Virus record (IMG/VR): IMGVR_UViG_3300034104_005687
Span: 124,001-188,000 of that record
Length of the DNA stretch: 64,000 nucleotides
Strand: one strand, 5' to 3'
The notes below the pieces were generated by a model that made no database searches, was not told where the DNA came from, and saw only the letters and a program-made list of their open reading frames with translations. Below, in pieces: positions 13,609 to 53,187 of the stretch (position 1 is the stretch's first letter; each line of letters starts with the position of its first letter). A program made the position numbers and the translations under genes.

Positions 13609-14751
13609 ATGTCCAATTTCTTTTGCGCAGCCCCCTGGCGTGGCCTGCATATCAATCCCCGAGGCGATGTCAAAACCTGCTGTGCAGGCAATCCCAACAT
13701 GCTGGGAAATCTAAATCAACAAAGCATTGTTGAAATTCTCAACAGCAACTTGATGGCAGAAATACGCCAAAACTTAGCACAGGGGCAACCTCATGAATAT
13801 TGCTCTAACTGTGTTCGTGCTGAACGTTTTGGCGCCGATAGTGAACGTAAATGGCACAACGATGTCAATCCAGATTTTGATTATGCCACAGCTGGAGATC
13901 AATATCATTATCCTGTGATTGTTGATGTGCGATGGAATACAACCTGCAATCTGAGTTGTAACTATTGCGGCGAAGCATGCAGTAGCAAATGGGCCAGCAT
14001 CAAAGGAATACCATTCAAGTCAGGCGCCAGACCCTATTATGATCAAGTTTGTGATTTTATTGAGCAACATTACAATCACATACATGAAGTTGCGCTGGTC
14101 GGTGGCGAACCGTTGTTGTTGCCTGAAAACGAACGACTGCTGGATGTCATCCCCAAAGATGCCATTGTTACATTGATTACCAATCTCAACGTTGACTTTG
14201 AAAAAAACAAAATATTCCAAAAGCTTGCTGCTCGTAACCGAGTAGGGTGGTCAATGAGTTTTGATAACATTGGGCCCAGACTTGAATATGTTCGACATGG
14301 TGCAAGCTGGAACACAATCAAAAACAATCTTGCTGTGATCAAAGATTTGATGAAAACACAAGGTCAGTGGGGCGGAATTCACGCAGTGTACAACCTCTAC
14401 AGCGCCACACGTATTTGCGAACTGCGTGAATTTGCTGACAAAACAGGTACCACAGTGCTGTGGCAAAATCTGTTTCAACCCGATTATCTTGATCCGTTCT
14501 TGCATGGTCCAGAAGTAGCGCAAGCTGCCATTGCAGAAATTGAACGTTTTTACGCCATGGGAATAGCAACACCAGCTGAACGCATGTTCTTTGATCAAGC
14601 CTTGCAGAATTATCAAACAGTTAAAACAGCACACCCTGGGATTGAACGTAAATTTGCAAAGCACATTCAAGAAATTGAATCAACGTATCACCCAGACACA
14701 AAAGGAAAGTTTGCCACATTGTGGCCTGAACTAGCAAGTTTATGCAAATAA
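13609..14751 (+). CDS. radical SAM protein with N-terminal SPASM/Twitch-like Cys cluster
   Basis: CAAPW..LHINPRGDVKTCC...CSNC, then CNLSCNYC and GGEP. Late promoter at 13599-13604. Confidence 0.88.
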   Translation: MSNFFCAAPWRGLHINPRGDVKTCCAGNPNMLGNLNQQSIVEILNSNLMAEIRQNLAQGQPHEYCSNCVRAERFGADSERKWHNDVNPDFDYATAGDQYHYPVIVDVRWNTTCNLSCNYCGEACSSKWASIKGIPFKSGARPYYDQVCDFIEQHYNHIHEVALVGGEPLLLPENERLLDVIPKDAIVTLITNLNVDFEKNKIFQKLAARNRVGWSMSFDNIGPRLEYVRHGASWNTIKNNLAVIKDLMKTQGQWGGIHAVYNLYSATRICELREFADKTGTTVLWQNLFQPDYLDPFLHGPEVAQAAIAEIERFYAMGIATPAERMFFDQALQNYQTVKTAHPGIERKFAKHIQEIESTYHPDTKGKFATLWPELASLCK

Positions 14752-28008: not shown

Positions 28009-28764
28009 ATGAAAATTGTACTTGTAACCGGCGGCTTTGACCCCATACATTCTGGACATCTTGCTTACTTTCAGTCAGCAAAAAAACTAGGCGATCGACT
28101 TGTAGTTGGCCTTAACTCAGACGAGTGGCTTGCTCGTAAAAAGGGTCGACCGTTTATGCCCATGAGCGAACGCTTTGCATTGGTTAGTGCATTAAGCATA
28201 GTAGATGAAGTTGTTGTTTATAACGATGATGATGGGTCAAGTTGTGATGCTATTCGACTGCTGAAAACACGTTATCCTAACGATCAAATTGTGTTTGCCA
28301 ACGGTGGTGATCGCACTAAAGACAACATTCCTGAAATGGTATTTGATGATGTGGAGTTTGTGTTTGGCGTAGGCGGCGAGAACAAAATGAACAGTAGTAG
28401 TTGGATCTTGGAAGACTGGAAAAAGCCCAAGACTAGCCGCGCCTGGGGATACTATCGTGTGTTGCATGAAGTAGGTGCCAATACCAAACTCAAAGAACTC
28501 ACAGTGAATCCCAAGACCTGTTTGAGCATGCAACGTCATGATCAACGTGCAGAGTTTTGGTTTGTGGCCGAAGGCGAAGCTGCTGTTTACACGTTGGATA
28601 ATTCTAGTGATCACGATCTTGTTGGACATTTTGGAGTGCATGAGCATATCTGGATCAAAAAGAATCAGTGGCACATGCTGTGCAACGAAACTGATCAGCC
28701 GCTCAAATTGATTGAAATTCAGTTTGGTGAAAACTGTGTAGAAGAAGATATCGAACGCCGATGA
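28009..28764 (+). CDS. cytidylyltransferase-like (HIGH) domain fused to a mannose-6-P-isomerase-type cupin
   Basis: VTGGFDPIHSGH, VGLNSDEW, FANGGDR. C-terminal RAWGYY..L, LSMQRH..RAEFW, H.L.N....LIEIQ.G..EEDIER. Confidence 0.88.
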   Translation: MKIVLVTGGFDPIHSGHLAYFQSAKKLGDRLVVGLNSDEWLARKKGRPFMPMSERFALVSALSIVDEVVVYNDDDGSSCDAIRLLKTRYPNDQIVFANGGDRTKDNIPEMVFDDVEFVFGVGGENKMNSSSWILEDWKKPKTSRAWGYYRVLHEVGANTKLKELTVNPKTCLSMQRHDQRAEFWFVAEGEAAVYTLDNSSDHDLVGHFGVHEHIWIKKNQWHMLCNETDQPLKLIEIQFGENCVEEDIERR

Positions 28765-31205: not shown

Positions 31206-31967
31206 ATGAAAGCATTTATAATTTACCTACCCGAACGAGAACACAGTGTTCAACATTCCAAGCTCATGCTAGATCAACTCAAAGAGTACAACATTGACGC
31301 TGAACTATTTGAAGGTACACCTGGTGATCAAGCAGTTGCCATGGCAGCAAAAGCCAAAAAAACATTGTATCCTTACAGTATCAAAAATCGTGTGTTGGAC
31401 AAACACGACATTGAACAACTGATACGCCCTGAACTGTACGAAGAATTCAAAAAGAAACATCGTTATGAAATCATTGAACGACAGTTGATCGGAGAAAAAG
31501 ACGTGGGCAAACTGAGTCGCCCCGGGGTAATTGGCTGTTTCTACAGTCACTACAACTTGTGGAAAAAGTGTGTGGAACTCAAAGAGCCCATTATGATTTT
31601 TGAGGATGATGTCAAGTTCTATCGTGGCTACCATCCTGTGGAATTCGACGGTGTGTTGATTCTGAGCTTGGGCAAGAGCTCGTTCATGACTGAGCCACAA
31701 AAAACCTACTTGGAAAACCCCACAGGTACCCCGTCGGCTCGTAAGTGGCAAAACTTCAGCATGCCTGGCGCCAGCGGCTATGCTATTATGCCCGATGCTG
31801 CTCTTGCCTTGGTCAAGTTTTATCGACCCTACTGGTATCCAGCAGACAATGCTATCAATCAGTTTGTGGTACCTGTGAAGATCAGCAACTATATCATGGG
31901 TCGCAATACCTTGCCTGAAGAAGGCAATGTATCCATGACCAAATCCAAGGACTGGGTCAAAGAATGA
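31206..31967 (+). CDS. glycosyltransferase family 25-like
   Basis: AFIIYL..R, GCFYSHY.LWKK, IFEDDV, GY.I.P.AA..L. Confidence 0.8.
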   Translation: MKAFIIYLPEREHSVQHSKLMLDQLKEYNIDAELFEGTPGDQAVAMAAKAKKTLYPYSIKNRVLDKHDIEQLIRPELYEEFKKKHRYEIIERQLIGEKDVGKLSRPGVIGCFYSHYNLWKKCVELKEPIMIFEDDVKFYRGYHPVEFDGVLILSLGKSSFMTEPQKTYLENPTGTPSARKWQNFSMPGASGYAIMPDAALALVKFYRPYWYPADNAINQFVVPVKISNYIMGRNTLPEEGNVSMTKSKDWVKE

Positions 31968-49937: not shown

Positions 49938-50005
49938 GCAATTGCACTTTTAATCACAACAAAGTTCAGTACCAATGCTTCGCTTAATGGTCCGGCACCT
50001 TGGTT
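49934..50005 (-). pseudogene. orphan duplicate of the C-terminal tip of the 50004-50930 gene
   Basis: Translates NQGAGPLSEALVLNFVVIKSAIA*, against NNTAGTLGEALVIRYAVINGSVT* in the intact gene (10/23 identical). Out of frame, no start codon. Confidence 0.7.
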
Positions 50006-50930
50006 AAGTTACTGACCCGTTGATCACAGCATAGCGTATGACCAGGGCTTCGCCTAGTGTACCAGCAGTGTTGTTTCTAACATAAATGGTAGCACTACCG
50101 GCTGCACATGCAGCATTGAGAGTGTATGACCCCAGTGTACCACCGCTTTGGTGTTGCAACAACAACAAGTCATTTGCACCAATGGTGCTGTTGGTCAATA
50201 CAAAATTCACTATAGTTGCAGCAGCCAAATTGGTGTTTTGCATGGTAATTTGGCCGCAACGTTTGTTTAACGTAACTCCTGTGGATTTGTTAGTAGCCTG
50301 TGCAACCGTCCCGCCAGTTCCAGTACTGTACCCAATGGCAGATTCTGTACTACCGAGCAATGGACGATTTAGATCATAAACAGTTATGGTAGTCCCGGCG
50401 TCTACAGTAGAGAATTCAAATTGATATGTTCCTGTGGCAGCAAACGTAATTACATTTGATGCATAACCTTGCAATCCTGTAGTGCCCAAACTGACGGCCA
50501 CTGGCAGGGTTAAAGTATGAGCAGTGCTGGTCACGGTCACAGCTACCACAACTGCACCTGCAGTGCCTGCTGTGGGCCAATTGGTAAAGTTCAAGCTGAC
50601 TGAACCGCTGGTGTTTATTTGTTGATACTGAGCAGCACTGTAGTCCACAGTAACAGATCCTGCAGTGGCAGTCAGAGCTGAATATGCATAGCTTACGTCT
50701 CGTAACTGCACAGCATAAATCTCTTGATTGTTCATGTTGTTGTCGAGAGTGGTTCCTGTGATGGCTGCTTTCAGCACTGATTTGTTCTGAAGCTCGGTTA
50801 TTTCATCCGATGCATATTGAAAATTTGTTCTAGTATTAGTAAAATTGTCACGCATGCCTTGTGTGTTGTTGGGCACACCGGCTACTGGGTAGGTCCCGTC
50901 GATGTTGTTGGGATTGATTTGACTGGTCAT
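50004..50930 (-). CDS. virion fibre/baseplate-type structural protein
   Basis: N-terminal helical anchor (INPNNIDGTYPVAG...RDNF...EITELQ), Thr/Ala/Gly-rich beta domains. Late promoter on - at 50955-50960. Confidence 0.7.
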   Translation of the reverse strand: MTSQINPNNIDGTYPVAGVPNNTQGMRDNFTNTRTNFQYASDEITELQNKSVLKAAITGTTLDNNMNNQEIYAVQLRDVSYAYSALTATAGSVTVDYSAAQYQQINTSGSVSLNFTNWPTAGTAGAVVVAVTVTSTAHTLTLPVAVSLGTTGLQGYASNVITFAATGTYQFEFSTVDAGTTITVYDLNRPLLGSTESAIGYSTGTGGTVAQATNKSTGVTLNKRCGQITMQNTNLAAATIVNFVLTNSTIGANDLLLLQHQSGGTLGSYTLNAACAAGSATIYVRNNTAGTLGEALVIRYAVINGSVT

Positions 50931-50954: not shown

Positions 50955-50984
50955 TATTTATTCCCTGCCCTATTTCGCTAAATA
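50955..50984. promoter_or_regulatory. divergent late promoters (TAAATA on - at 50955-50960, on + at 50979-50984)
   Basis: Both motifs lie in a 75-nt intergenic gap. Confidence 0.65.
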
Positions 50985-51005: not shown

Positions 51006-51254
51006 ATGCAAAAAAAGACCCGCAGCTTGCTGGAAGAATTGGACTCGTTATATGTCGAACGTGATCGCAAATTGCTGATCGAAAATCGAGCTACTACAGT
51101 AATTGAGTCTGCCATCAGGCTGATCCAACAAATAGAAGATGAGTACACAGCAGATCAAGCAGAAAATCTCACACGCAAATTGCTGAACGCAATTCGCACC
51201 AAAGACACTGGCAAATTTTCTAGGTCAGTAAAAAGAACACATTCAGACTCATAA
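51006..51254 (+). CDS. small helical hypothetical protein
   Basis: 82 aa, first gene of a late unit. Confidence 0.7.
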   Translation: MQKKTRSLLEELDSLYVERDRKLLIENRATTVIESAIRLIQQIEDEYTADQAENLTRKLLNAIRTKDTGKFSRSVKRTHSDS

Positions 51255-51255
51255 C

Positions 51256-53187
51256 ATGAACATTTTCGAAGGCGGCAACGTATTCAAAGACAAAATGGGC
51301 GTACCGCTCACTCGTCGTATCAAACAGGGCGAAATTGCCGGCACCATCAAATGGTTGGAATCTGTAACAGGGCTGGATTTGCACGGTGTCAATGACCCAG
51401 GCACAAACTACCCCGTGAAATGGCTGGGCAGCACCGGCAAAAAAGACGACTCGGGCGATCTTGATCTAGCAGTGGAGTTGTCAGACACTACCAAGCCTGA
51501 ACTCAAGGCACACCTGGACAGTTATGTGTCTGGACAAAAGCAAGATCCCCGAGATTTTGTGCGTCTCAGTGGCGAAGCAGTGCATTTCAAAACGCCCATA
51601 TTGGGCGATGCCAACAATGGATTTGTGCAAACAGATTTCATGTTCATGCCCAACATCGACTGGGGTTCTTTTTTCTTGGCTGGCGGCACAGACTCCCAGT
51701 ACAAGGGCATGTTTAGAAATGTGCTGATGAGCTCCATTGCCAAGTCTCAAGGACTCAAAGCCAGTGCCAAGGGCATTACCAGTCGTACCACAGACAGTGT
51801 GATCACCATGGATCCAGATCGTGCTGCTGAAATGCTGCTGGGACAGGGCATGAAGCGTGGCAACTTGAAAAACGTTGAAAGCATCTACACAGCCTTGGCC
51901 AATCACCCTGATCGTGACGCCAAACTCAAAGACTTTAGAGAATACCTGGCCAGAGAAGGTGTCAAAGAGCCCAGCACAGTGGCCGAAAGTGATGTGAACT
52001 TTTTGTCCCGACTGCGTGATCGCATTGTGAATCAAGGCATGGCGCCCTTGATCGAAGCTGGCTCAGCAAACCCGTATCAACTGTACGAAGCTGAAGCGGC
52101 TGGTGTTGGCGGCAGAGCCAAGGGCATCGAGCACCTGGAAGACCTGGTGTTCAGAAACGGCGCAGCTGGCATTAGCCAAGCACTGACCATTGCACAACAG
52201 GCCACTGAACAGCCCAGCACAGTCACTGCCAAGTGGGACGGCAAACCTGCTGTGATCTGGGGCCGCAAACCCGCCACAGGTGAGTTTGTGCTCACAGACG
52301 GATCAGGATTTGAAGCCAAGAGCTACGACGGTCTTGCTACCAGCCCGCGCATGATGGCAGACATTCAGAATCGACGATCTGGCGAACGCTCAGGCCTGAT
52401 ACAGTTGTATGCCACACTGTGGCCTGCACTAGAAGCCAGTTTGCCGCCCAACTTCCGTGGTTATGTCAAAGGCGACTTGCTGTACACAGACACGCCGCCT
52501 GTGGAAGCCGGAAACTATGTGTTCCGTCCCAATACTATAGAATACAAAATTCCAGTTCGCAGTGCCTTGGGACAACGCATTGGAGCCAGCAACATTGGCA
52601 TTGCAGTTCACAGCATGTATGCAGACACAGGCGAAGCCCGACAACCACTCAGCGGGGTCAAATTCAACGAAGTTCCGGGACTGATGCTGGAACGCCCAGC
52701 CACACCTTCAGCACTGGTACTGGACAAAAACATAGTGCAACAGCTCAAGACCATTGTGAGATCACAAGGTGCCAACATGAAAGTGCTGTTTAATCCTGCT
52801 GAACTGCGTGCTCAACAAGTCACAGATCTGTTTAGATTGGCAGTGGATTTTATCAACACCAAGGTAGGCGGTCCCTTGGAACCAGCTAACCAGTTAATTG
52901 TGGAGTTTGGAGAATGGCTGCAAGGGCGAGTAACACCGCGCAAGTTCAACAACATTGTGGAATATCTCAAAAACCCCAGTACAAACCAGGAAGCACTGAG
53001 TGCGGCGTTTTTGGCATTTGAATTGCTGCATGCACTCAAAACAGACCTATTGCGTCAAGCAGACACTCAGCATCCTGGGCAAGAAGGCTGGGTAATGGCC
53101 ACGCCTGCAGGCTATGCCAAAGCAGTAAATCGCTTTGATCCCAATGCTTTTGCTGCTCAAAATCGAGCCAGAAATAACCCCAACTGA
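51256..53187 (+). CDS. PolX/Pol-beta-like nucleotidyltransferase fused to a covalent-NTase (ligase-fold, KxDG) domain
   Basis: N-terminal LGSTGKKDDSGDLDLAV, VQTDFMF and YKGMFRN..M..IAK.QG. C-terminal AKWDGKPA, YVKGDLL, QEGWV, YAKAV. Confidence 0.65.
   Translation: MNIFEGGNVFKDKMGVPLTRRIKQGEIAGTIKWLESVTGLDLHGVNDPGTNYPVKWLGSTGKKDDSGDLDLAVELSDTTKPELKAHLDSYVSGQKQDPRDFVRLSGEAVHFKTPILGDANNGFVQTDFMFMPNIDWGSFFLAGGTDSQYKGMFRNVLMSSIAKSQGLKASAKGITSRTTDSVITMDPDRAAEMLLGQGMKRGNLKNVESIYTALANHPDRDAKLKDFREYLAREGVKEPSTVAESDVNFLSRLRDRIVNQGMAPLIEAGSANPYQLYEAEAAGVGGRAKGIEHLEDLVFRNGAAGISQALTIAQQATEQPSTVTAKWDGKPAVIWGRKPATGEFVLTDGSGFEAKSYDGLATSPRMMADIQNRRSGERSGLIQLYATLWPALEASLPPNFRGYVKGDLLYTDTPPVEAGNYVFRPNTIEYKIPVRSALGQRIGASNIGIAVHSMYADTGEARQPLSGVKFNEVPGLMLERPATPSALVLDKNIVQQLKTIVRSQGANMKVLFNPAELRAQQVTDLFRLAVDFINTKVGGPLEPANQLIVEFGEWLQGRVTPRKFNNIVEYLKNPSTNQEALSAAFLAFELLHALKTDLLRQADTQHPGQEGWVMATPAGYAKAVNRFDPNAFAAQNRARNNPN

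Follow-up and report, generated by a model that had tools for sequence, protein, structure and literature searches.

The window analyzed here, a stretch of 64,000 nucleotides taken from the virus record IMGVR_UViG_3300034104_005687 of IMG/VR (positions 124,001 to 188,000 of that record), carries at positions 51256-53187 a gene for a 643-amino acid (aa) protein that appears to unite two enzymes in one chain, namely a minimal nucleotidyltransferase resembling the family X DNA polymerases (PolX) and, behind it, the Pfam domain DUF6267, predicted to be a divergent ligase-like enzyme. We consider it about an even chance that this is a late, probably virion-borne protein that fills and seals incoming DNA. 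The source of the window is an uncultured jumbo phage, given that full-length homologs of the protein sit on contigs of up to 352-360 kb. A word-seeded search brought up ~4000 homologs, of which many span the full length at 70-99% identity, on contigs of up to 360 kb. When 1.84 billion cluster representatives were scanned exhaustively, 1390 relatives appeared at E up to 1e-3, while phage records gave no match at the DNA level.

A polymerase X-like domain joined to a ligase-like domain

The gene and the features of its product are as follows (h, hydrophobic residue; x, any residue):

51256..53187, + strand: whole gene (open reading frame (ORF) call), ATG start, 643 aa, 70.3 kDa, two domains
51256..51990, + strand: N domain, aa 1-245, minimal family X-like (Pol beta fold) nucleotidyltransferase, from AlphaFold (AF2), Foldseek and the ESM Atlas
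51427..51465 (G58-D70), + strand: L-G58-S59-x8-D68-L-D70-L-A-V, nucleotidyltransferase signature with two predicted metal-binding Asp
51625..51645, + strand: V-Q-T-D127-F-M-F, predicted third catalytic Asp
52000..52041, + strand: basic inter-domain helix F249-L-S-R-L-R-D-R-I-V-N-Q-G-M262, flanked by h-x-E (E244, E267, E278)
52123..53184, + strand: C domain, aa 290-643, Pfam DUF6267, predicted divergent covalent nucleotidyltransferase
52231..52242, + strand: K326-W-D-G, motif I at a strand end, K326 being the predicted AMP-accepting lysine
52468..52482, + strand: K-G406-D407-L-L, motif III-like strand, with Asp replacing the usual Glu
53083..53121, + strand: the two final strands, with E610-G-W-V resembling motif IV and K622 resembling motif V

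Conservation was read from two alignments, A1 with 48 diverse N-domain sequences and A2 with 62 C-domain sequences. An original prediction, made from the letters of the window, had quoted this reading frame and its motifs as the marks of a PolX-like polymerase fused to a ligase fold; the frame and all of these motifs are real and in place, and they are not a matter of chance because they are conserved across both alignments. In A1, G58, S66 and D70 are invariant, and D68, D127, G6, G7, K11, H110, V124, Q125, M129 and F130 are kept in at least 90% of the sequences, so that the hG[GS]-x(7-13)-DhD signature of the Pol beta superfamily, together with its third carboxylate on a later strand, is present in the N domain. 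The stretch Y-K-G-M-F-R-N...I-A-K-S-Q-G follows at aa 149-166 of the 643-aa protein.

The AF2 model of the N domain built on A1 has a predicted local distance difference test score (pLDDT) of 90.0 and a predicted template modelling score (pTM) of 0.80, and every one of its top 50 Foldseek matches in the Protein Data Bank (PDB) is a DNA polymerase of family X (E 4.5e-5 to 9e-4, probability 0.99-1.00), including the Thermus and Deinococcus PolX enzymes and Pol beta, lambda and mu. The ESM Atlas neighbours of an N-domain relative carry DNA_pol_B_palm or DNA_pol_B_thumb, and the model of this relative superposes at template modelling (TM) scores of 0.5-0.7 on a minimal phage PolX, a giant-virus PolX and a PolX-NAD-ligase architecture. 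By sequence, the N domain has no match in Pfam (E up to 10), PHROG or PDB (phmmer, and profile hmmsearch against PDB), and in the Pfam scan only 2 of the 48 members of A1 reach DNA_pol_B_palm, at E 0.002. Modelling and conservation thus support the reading of aa 1-245 as a minimal Pol-beta/family-X-like nucleotidyltransferase fold, with D68, D70 and D127 as its predicted metal ligands.

RlaP (PF10127), another nucleotidyltransferase of the Pol beta superfamily, was considered for this domain and rejected: neither the window protein nor any of the 48 relatives matches PF10127, whereas the control, T4 NrdC.11, does so at E 4.6e-12, and hhalign finds no similarity between A1 and T4 NrdC.11 (probability 0.15). 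One member of A1 weakly matches (E 0.0012) crAss_CARGO2, the Pfam family of crassvirus cargo protein 2, which is probably noise; cargo proteins are virion proteins that are ejected from the particle.

The C-terminal part matches DUF6267 (PF19782) over aa 291-627 with 104.9 bits against a gathering cut-off of 27 (E 8e-30), a family for which our literature search found no paper. Ten residues are invariant in A2 (E295, D296, K326, D328, G329, D348, D407, Y430, H452 and K595), and G406, E610, G611, V613, K622 and R626 are conserved in at least 90%. In the AF2 model of this domain (pLDDT 95.5, pTM 0.90), the strand at aa 323-326 precedes KWDG and that at aa 402-410 carries G-D407-L-L, and the candidate motifs follow one another on strands in the order typical of ligases, K326-x-D-G (I), G-D407-L-L (III), Y430 (IIIa), E610-G-W-V (IV) and K622-x-V-x-R (V), with motifs III to V assigned by pattern and not by superposition. 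A helical insert of ~115 aa lies between motifs IIIa and IV. The top 13 Foldseek matches in PDB are all polynucleotide ligases, among them the archaeal RNA ligase MthRnl, the Thermococcus and Pyrococcus DNA ligases, human LIG1, the fungal tRNA ligase Trl1, the ligase of African swine fever virus (ASFV) and T4 RNA ligase 1 (Rnl1), and capping enzymes come next; the Atlas neighbours are mostly PF09414 RNA_ligase proteins. The Pfam scan of the 62 members of A2 (E up to 10) gave a single RNA_lig_T4_1 match at E 0.14, and hhalign of A2 against T4 Rnl2 reached a probability of 0.06.

Both halves of the original prediction, then, are supported at the level of fold: the polymerase half through its model, its PolX matches and its conserved G58, D68, D70 and D127, and the ligase half through its invariant KxDG and ligase-only best matches, though these last are statistically weak. 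The C domain probably belongs to the covalent nucleotidyltransferase (ligase) superfamily.

Homologs of the polymerase half are found in virions

In the jumbo phage Atu_ph07, gp65 is a homolog of the N domain (hmmsearch E 4e-31), and it was detected in purified virions through tandem mass spectrometry with electrospray ionization (ESI-MS/MS), with 10 unique peptides and 36.8% coverage (Table S5, PMC6102473). The same virions contain gp68, a 9.95-kDa homolog of the 82-aa protein encoded just upstream of our gene, with 5 peptides and 63.8% coverage (PMC6102473). The molecular weights that we computed for Atu_ph07 gp60-gp69 match Table S5 exactly. In PA5oct, for which 93 virion proteins were reported, gp253 aligns with A1 at an hhalign probability of 99% (E 2e-18) and is annotated in its record as "structural protein, ESI-MS/MS", while gp259, the homolog of the 82-aa protein, carries virion evidence too. 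In the cyanophages S-SM1 and S-CREM2, the cytidylyltransferase-like partner of DUF6267 was detected in virions. For the homologs, experiments therefore support the packaging of the polymerase half, and likewise that of two companions, but not that of the ligase half; by analogy, the PolX-ligase protein of the window phage may be packaged as well.

Close to these genes in Atu_ph07, gp60-gp63 (L004:6558-9935) form a run of seemingly paralogous ~30-41-kDa virion proteins, all detected by mass spectrometry (MS), and their N-termini, M-[RK]-[WL]-x-Q-L-x-E, are similar to the capsid-targeting peptides of T4.

The transcription unit and its neighbours

Two further features lie directly upstream of the 643-aa gene:

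50979..50984, + strand: TAAATA promoter-like motif, 27 nt 5' of the 82-aa ORF, probable start of a two-gene unit
51006..51254, + strand: 82-aa ORF, its stop 1 nt before the ATG of the 643-aa gene; homolog of a small jumbo-phage virion protein

The 82-aa ORF matches phrog_11854 (E 1.1e-14), a family annotated as virion protein, with homologs in PA5oct, Phosso and PBECO4. TAAATA occurs 29 times in the window, and 19 of these copies stand 8-80 nt upstream of a start codon on the same strand, against 4.4% of positions expected. The gene had been called late and assigned to a TAAATA-driven unit, and the late call is supported by the copy of the motif ahead of the 82-aa ORF and by the copies that precede the tail sheath and tail tube genes of the window. 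The homologous unit of S-PM2 is preceded by AATAAATA and that of Melnitz by TATAAATA. It is plausible that the 82-aa and 643-aa genes form a late or middle-late unit.

On the other side of the promoter-like motif, a divergent gene of 308 aa (phrog_18251, unknown function; window 50004-50930, minus strand) has its own minus-strand TAAATA at 50960, 30 nt upstream, and the 75-nt intergenic region between it and the 82-aa ORF holds the two promoter-like motifs back to back. In S-PM2, a tRNA-Ser(TGA) detected by ARAGORN (L001:3813-3900), which is not in the feature table of the record, lies just upstream of S-PM2d138, and the AATAAATA motif stands between this tRNA gene and the S-PM2d138 start codon.

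The inter-domain helix and candidate processing sites

The original prediction also held that the protein is packaged as a precursor, and it pointed to the start, MNIFE, to hydrophobic-x-Glu sites in the linker and to the prohead protease of T4, which cuts packaged proteins after Glu. The linker sites V-A-E244, L-I-E267 and L-Y-E278 are indeed there, but the stretch that holds them is no plain linker, since it contains a conserved basic helix. The consensus [FY]-L-[AS]-R-L-R-D-R-I-V-N-Q-G persists, in surroundings that vary, down to an overall identity of ~35%, the AF2 model places a helix at aa 246-259, and this element may bind nucleic acid or dock the two domains. The count of [LIV]-x-E sites is 7 in the whole protein against 6.9 expected, so that a general excess was rejected, and 4 in aa 236-290 against 0.6 expected.

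The h-x-E of "NIFE" stands at a fixed place before G-G-N-V-F-K in all 58 N domains examined, and as the motif h-x-E-G-G-N-V-F-K is also found where the domain is internal to longer proteins, it belongs to the conserved domain and MNIFE was rejected as a simple N-terminal targeting peptide. The picture at the C domain is different: an h-x-E lies at most 14 aa upstream of its core (R-I-x-H-x-E-D) in 86 of 87 representatives, compared with 16% of control windows, at variable spacing and followed by A, G or S after the Glu in 67 of the 86. Of the 31 standalone C-domain proteins whose leader measures 8-40 aa, 20 begin with M-x(1-4)-[EQD]-h, as in M-K-I-I-E-L-L-T-E-A, and such DUF6267 leaders are similar to the N-termini of the T4 record, M-K-T-Y-Q-E-F-I-A-E-A in IPII/IPIII and M-A-K-I-N-E-L-L-R-E-S in gp24. 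In T4, gp21 removes these leader peptides by cutting after Glu, and the genome of Atu_ph07 carries a gp21 homolog.

Separate, fused and rearranged relatives

The two parts of the protein (aa 3-245 and aa 288-640) also exist as separate proteins of ~230-260 aa and 360-400 aa, respectively, and in the search of representatives, they were found fused both in the order of the window and in reverse order, as well as within longer proteins that carry an NT5C phosphatase of the haloacid dehalogenase (HAD) type, DUF2608, DUF5661 or Amidoligase_2. Many lineages have an RNA-ligase-like domain next to the N domain or fused to it. In Atu_ph07 and Phosso, a ligase-like gene with K-L-D-G-S stands directly before the N-domain gene and overlaps it; its product in Atu_ph07 (gp66, 38.04 kDa) weakly matches PF09414 (E 0.002) and has only 3 close relatives, and hhalign of A2 finds no link to the ligase-like proteins of either phage. 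PA5oct has both domains in separate genes, its gp256 aligning with A2 over the motif IV/V stretch (hhalign probability 87%, E 4.5e-6) and matching it by Foldseek too (E 4.7e-6). Melnitz gene 15, S-PM2d140, PA5oct gp255 and gp257, S-SM1_191 and S-CREM2 gp154 were examined as further candidates and are not N-domain homologs.

DUF6267 occurs in 295 phage records, mostly of cyanophages. In the T4-like cyanophages, it forms the protein T4-GC71, which overlaps or is fused to T4-GC190, a CTP_transf_like enzyme resembling nicotinamide mononucleotide adenylyltransferase (NMNAT), and, as seen among the Atlas neighbours, a CTP_transf_like, NMNAT-like domain is also found joined to relatives of the N domain. 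For S-PM2, the 2010 cyanophage table lists T4-GC71 and T4-GC190 as two ORFs at wild-type coordinates 103025-104804, whereas the record of a deletion mutant (L001:3986-5761) has one 591-aa ORF in their place; in S-SM1, they are separate overlapping genes. Elsewhere in the window (28009-28764), a further gene behind a TAAATA codes for a CTP_transf_like domain (E 1.2e-15) to which a C-terminus of the mannose-6-phosphate isomerase/cupin type is fused; it belongs to the broad class of the NMNAT-like partner of DUF6267 but may be an unrelated sugar-nucleotide enzyme.

In the metagenomic locus L009, the N-domain gene lies two genes upstream of a different Pol-beta nucleotidyltransferase, which abuts a DUF6267 gene. 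The latter nucleotidyltransferase (L009:7306-8004, 232 aa, T-G-S...S-D-V-D-L-H-L) belongs to the Pol beta superfamily, with weak matches to NTP_transf_2 and the MTPAP palm; it overlaps the start of the standalone DUF6267 gene, and its sequence is unrelated to the N domain of the window.

Comparison with known polymerase-ligase and packaged systems

One of the closest precedents is PgVPolX of Phaeocystis globosa virus, in which a PolX is fused to an NAD+-dependent ligase domain and for which gap filling and nick sealing were shown (PMC5537341). Its PolX-ligase architecture is the one found among the Atlas structural neighbours of our N-domain relative. The two differ, of course, in their parts, since PgVPolX has lyase/fingers, palm and thumb domains recognized by Pfam and a LigA-type NAD+ ligase, whereas the window protein has a 245-aa polymerase domain outside Pfam and an RNA-ligase-like DUF6267 devoid of an oligonucleotide-binding (OB) domain; virion association is not known for PgVPolX, while for the window protein, from a phage with a bacterial host, it is indicated. 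RlaP (PF10127) accompanies the RNA ligases Rnl1, Rnl2 or RtcB in RNA repair operons and in jumbo phages, adding 1-2 nucleoside monophosphates (NMP) before ligation. It shares with our system the genomic coupling of a Pol-beta-superfamily nucleotidyltransferase to a ligase and the predicted order of nucleotide addition and then ligation, and it differs in that the N domain of the window fails PF10127, is PolX-like, is fused to its partner and not merely in one operon with it, and has homologs packaged in virions.

Pol X of ASFV is a minimal palm-plus-thumb PolX that repairs short gaps together with a ligase which the virus provides for this purpose, the two being separate proteins, and this ligase has DNA-binding and OB domains. 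The minimal PolX architecture is common to ASFV and the window protein, and the C domain has the ASFV ligase among its fold matches; the division into two proteins and the additional domains of the ligase set ASFV apart. Bacterial LigD combines polymerase, end-cleaning and ligase modules in one protein, and its difference from ours lies in a polymerase of the archaeo-eukaryotic primase (AEP) fold and not of the Pol beta fold. For the C domain, there is a likeness to T4 Rnl1 and the archaeal Rnl3 (MthRnl), both among its top PDB matches, in which an OB-less core is combined with a helical module and motif I is not followed by the Arg of DNA ligases; T4 Rnl1 also has a short spacing from motif IV to motif V, as has the C domain. 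Both differ from it in the lack of detectable sequence similarity, in a helical module that is appended and not inserted between motifs IIIa and IV, and in a motif III Glu where the C domain has Asp.

Concerning packaging, T4 IPII/IPIII, gp24 and Alt are made from late promoters, are packaged and have an N-terminal peptide removed by the gp21 protease. Their leaders, M-x-x-x-x-E-h-h-x-E followed by A or S, resemble those of many standalone DUF6267 proteins and of the Atu_ph07 virion paralogs, in contrast to the window protein, in which the first h-x-E falls within a motif conserved in the domain.

Proposed role and alternative explanations

In the mechanism that we propose, both enzyme activities, the DNA substrate, the packaging and cleavage of the window protein and the timing of its action are inferred. 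The 643-aa gene would be co-transcribed with the gene of the 82-aa virion protein from a late-type TAAATA promoter, and the PolX-ligase protein would most likely be loaded into the capsid, where a prohead protease of the T4 type may trim it or split it at its h-x-E sites. Entering the cell with the genome, it would repair the incoming DNA by filling and sealing its gaps, nicks or ends: the PolX-like half would extend a 3'-OH by one or a few nucleotides, K326 of the DUF6267 half would accept AMP and hand it on to a 5'-phosphate, by which the nick would be sealed, and the basic helix would join the two domains. We favour DNA as the substrate because of the PolX-like fold, the capsid location of the homologs and the precedent of PgVPolX.

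A number of observations weigh against this proposal. The ligase-like gp66 of Atu_ph07 is absent from the virion Table S5 (PMC6102473), the ligase-like gp256 of PA5oct bears no MS note, and cyanophage T4-GC71 (DUF6267) has no proteomic flag, so that the claim that both enzymes are packaged together finds support in homologs of the PolX half (Atu_ph07 gp65, PA5oct gp253) and none in the separate ligase-like proteins of these phages. At the N domain, the TM-scores to PDB PolX structures are modest (0.30-0.41), and the 8-kDa deoxyribose phosphate (dRP)-lyase and helix-hairpin-helix DNA-binding modules of Pol beta were found neither by Pfam nor in the model; the domain spans only ~245 aa, with D68 lying 67 residues from the start, and we take it for a minimal palm-plus-thumb enzyme because these modules are missing. 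At the C domain, the PDB fold scores are weak (E 0.012-0.24, probability up to 0.90, TM ~0.2), phmmer and profile hmmsearch against PDB tied the domain, by sequence or by profile, neither to a ligase family nor to a PDB chain, and several features speak for an RNA ligase more than for a DNA ligase: there is neither an OB domain nor a motif VI, the protein ending ~20 residues after motif V, no Arg follows KxDG, and the first annotated BFVD folds after DUF6267 itself are RNA ligases (E 1.4e-3 and 8e-3). Moreover, the first h-x-E, fixed before GGN, may belong simply to the fold; none of the head, protease and sigma proteins of T4 and S-CREM2 used as tblastn queries has a match in the 64-kb window, so that no prohead protease gene was found there; and TAAATA is not confined to structural genes, since it also precedes those of non-structural enzymes, a radical S-adenosylmethionine (SAM) enzyme and a 2-oxoglutarate (2OG)-Fe(II) oxygenase (window 13609-14751 and 31206-31967).

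Those C-domain features lead to the first competing explanation, and a serious one, intracellular RNA repair, in which an RlaP-like nucleotidyltransferase would restore 1-2 nt at an RNA 3' end and the ligase half would reseal tRNA or mRNA cut by anticodon nucleases or RNase defences, and which we regard as rather unlikely. It has a model in the RlaP enzymes, common in jumbo phages, which are tied genomically to RNA ligases and extend an RNA 3'-OH; the nearest annotated relatives of the OB-less C domain are RNA ligases (MthRnl, Trl1, T4 Rnl1, PF09414), the weak PF09414 match of the Atu_ph07 neighbour points the same way, the fused HAD phosphatases could serve as end-healing modules, and a second nucleotidyltransferase, similar to the minimal nucleotidyltransferases and poly(A) polymerases (MNT/PAP), abuts DUF6267 in L009. 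Nevertheless, the N domain is not RlaP by either PF10127 or hhalign, the structures that match it best are without exception those of PolX DNA polymerases, the virion location of its homologs better suits a DNA-bound role, and neither a fusion to polynucleotide kinase nor a tRNA gene in the window was seen.

An unpackaged late enzyme of DNA maturation or replication, filling gaps and sealing nicks left in concatemers by Okazaki fragments or recombination before packaging, with DUF6267 as the "missing" ligase of cyanophages, seems to us unlikely. The ligase-like proteins do go undetected in virions, and the gene lies just downstream of the primase and DnaB/gp41 helicase genes in the window, S-PM2, S-SM1 and Melnitz, an order found likewise in Phosso, Atu_ph07, PA5oct and L009; a recognizable g30 ligase is, furthermore, missing in cyanomyoviruses (PMC2984593), while most of the DUF6267 records come from cyanophages. 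We have, however, down-weighted this synteny as evidence for replication, given that the block adjoining the helicase and primase consists mostly of virion genes in PA5oct, PBECO4 and Atu_ph07 and that the shared order may reflect shared ancestry. The PolX-like homologs are robustly virion-associated, and S-CREM2, of which 58 kb were searched and showed no DUF6267, possesses a small protein annotated as "DNA ligase" and an RNase H of its own. We think it quite improbable that the C domain is no polynucleotide ligase and, with its lysine-nucleotide chemistry or with none, serves instead in a nucleotide- or NAD-linked reaction with the NMNAT-like partner, in a cap-like end modification or in a structural role in the virion. 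The weak fold scores without a sequence link, the capping enzymes among the fold matches, the fusion of both DUF6267 and the N domain to CTP_transf_like domains, and the fusion to Amidoligase_2 would fit such a role, but it hardly accounts for motifs I, III, IV and V standing in order on the expected strands, for the invariant KxDG and for a top 13 made of ligases only.

Returning to the virion-borne fill-and-seal protein, we hold as possible, though doubtful, its fuller form, in which jumbo phages and their relatives inject a polymerase-ligase kit of the capsid with the genome, and this kit gap-fills, seals or end-joins incoming DNA before expression of any phage gene, for example against exonucleases or nicking defences, and in which DUF6267 with the NMNAT-like enzyme is the missing cyanophage ligase. 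Repair before any phage gene is expressed, and the anti-defence role that the original prediction attached to it, would follow from such a kit by inference only.

Significance

The coupling of a Pol-beta-fold nucleotidyltransferase to a ligase is already known in principle. What is new here is that both families are unannotated, that the ligase-like architecture is OB-less and has an inserted helical module, that the setting is a phage, and that there is evidence of capsid delivery. Two very abundant phage families thereby receive a candidate function, and a PolX-like family without a Pfam model is brought to light. A compact 70-kDa fill-and-seal enzyme could, in addition, be a useful reagent. 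If the proposal is true, phages package nucleic-acid repair enzymes, which would be a new class of injected cargo beside RNA polymerases and ADP-ribosyltransferases, and DUF6267 would offer a candidate answer to the apparent absence of a ligase in the marine cyanomyoviruses, which are ecologically dominant viruses.

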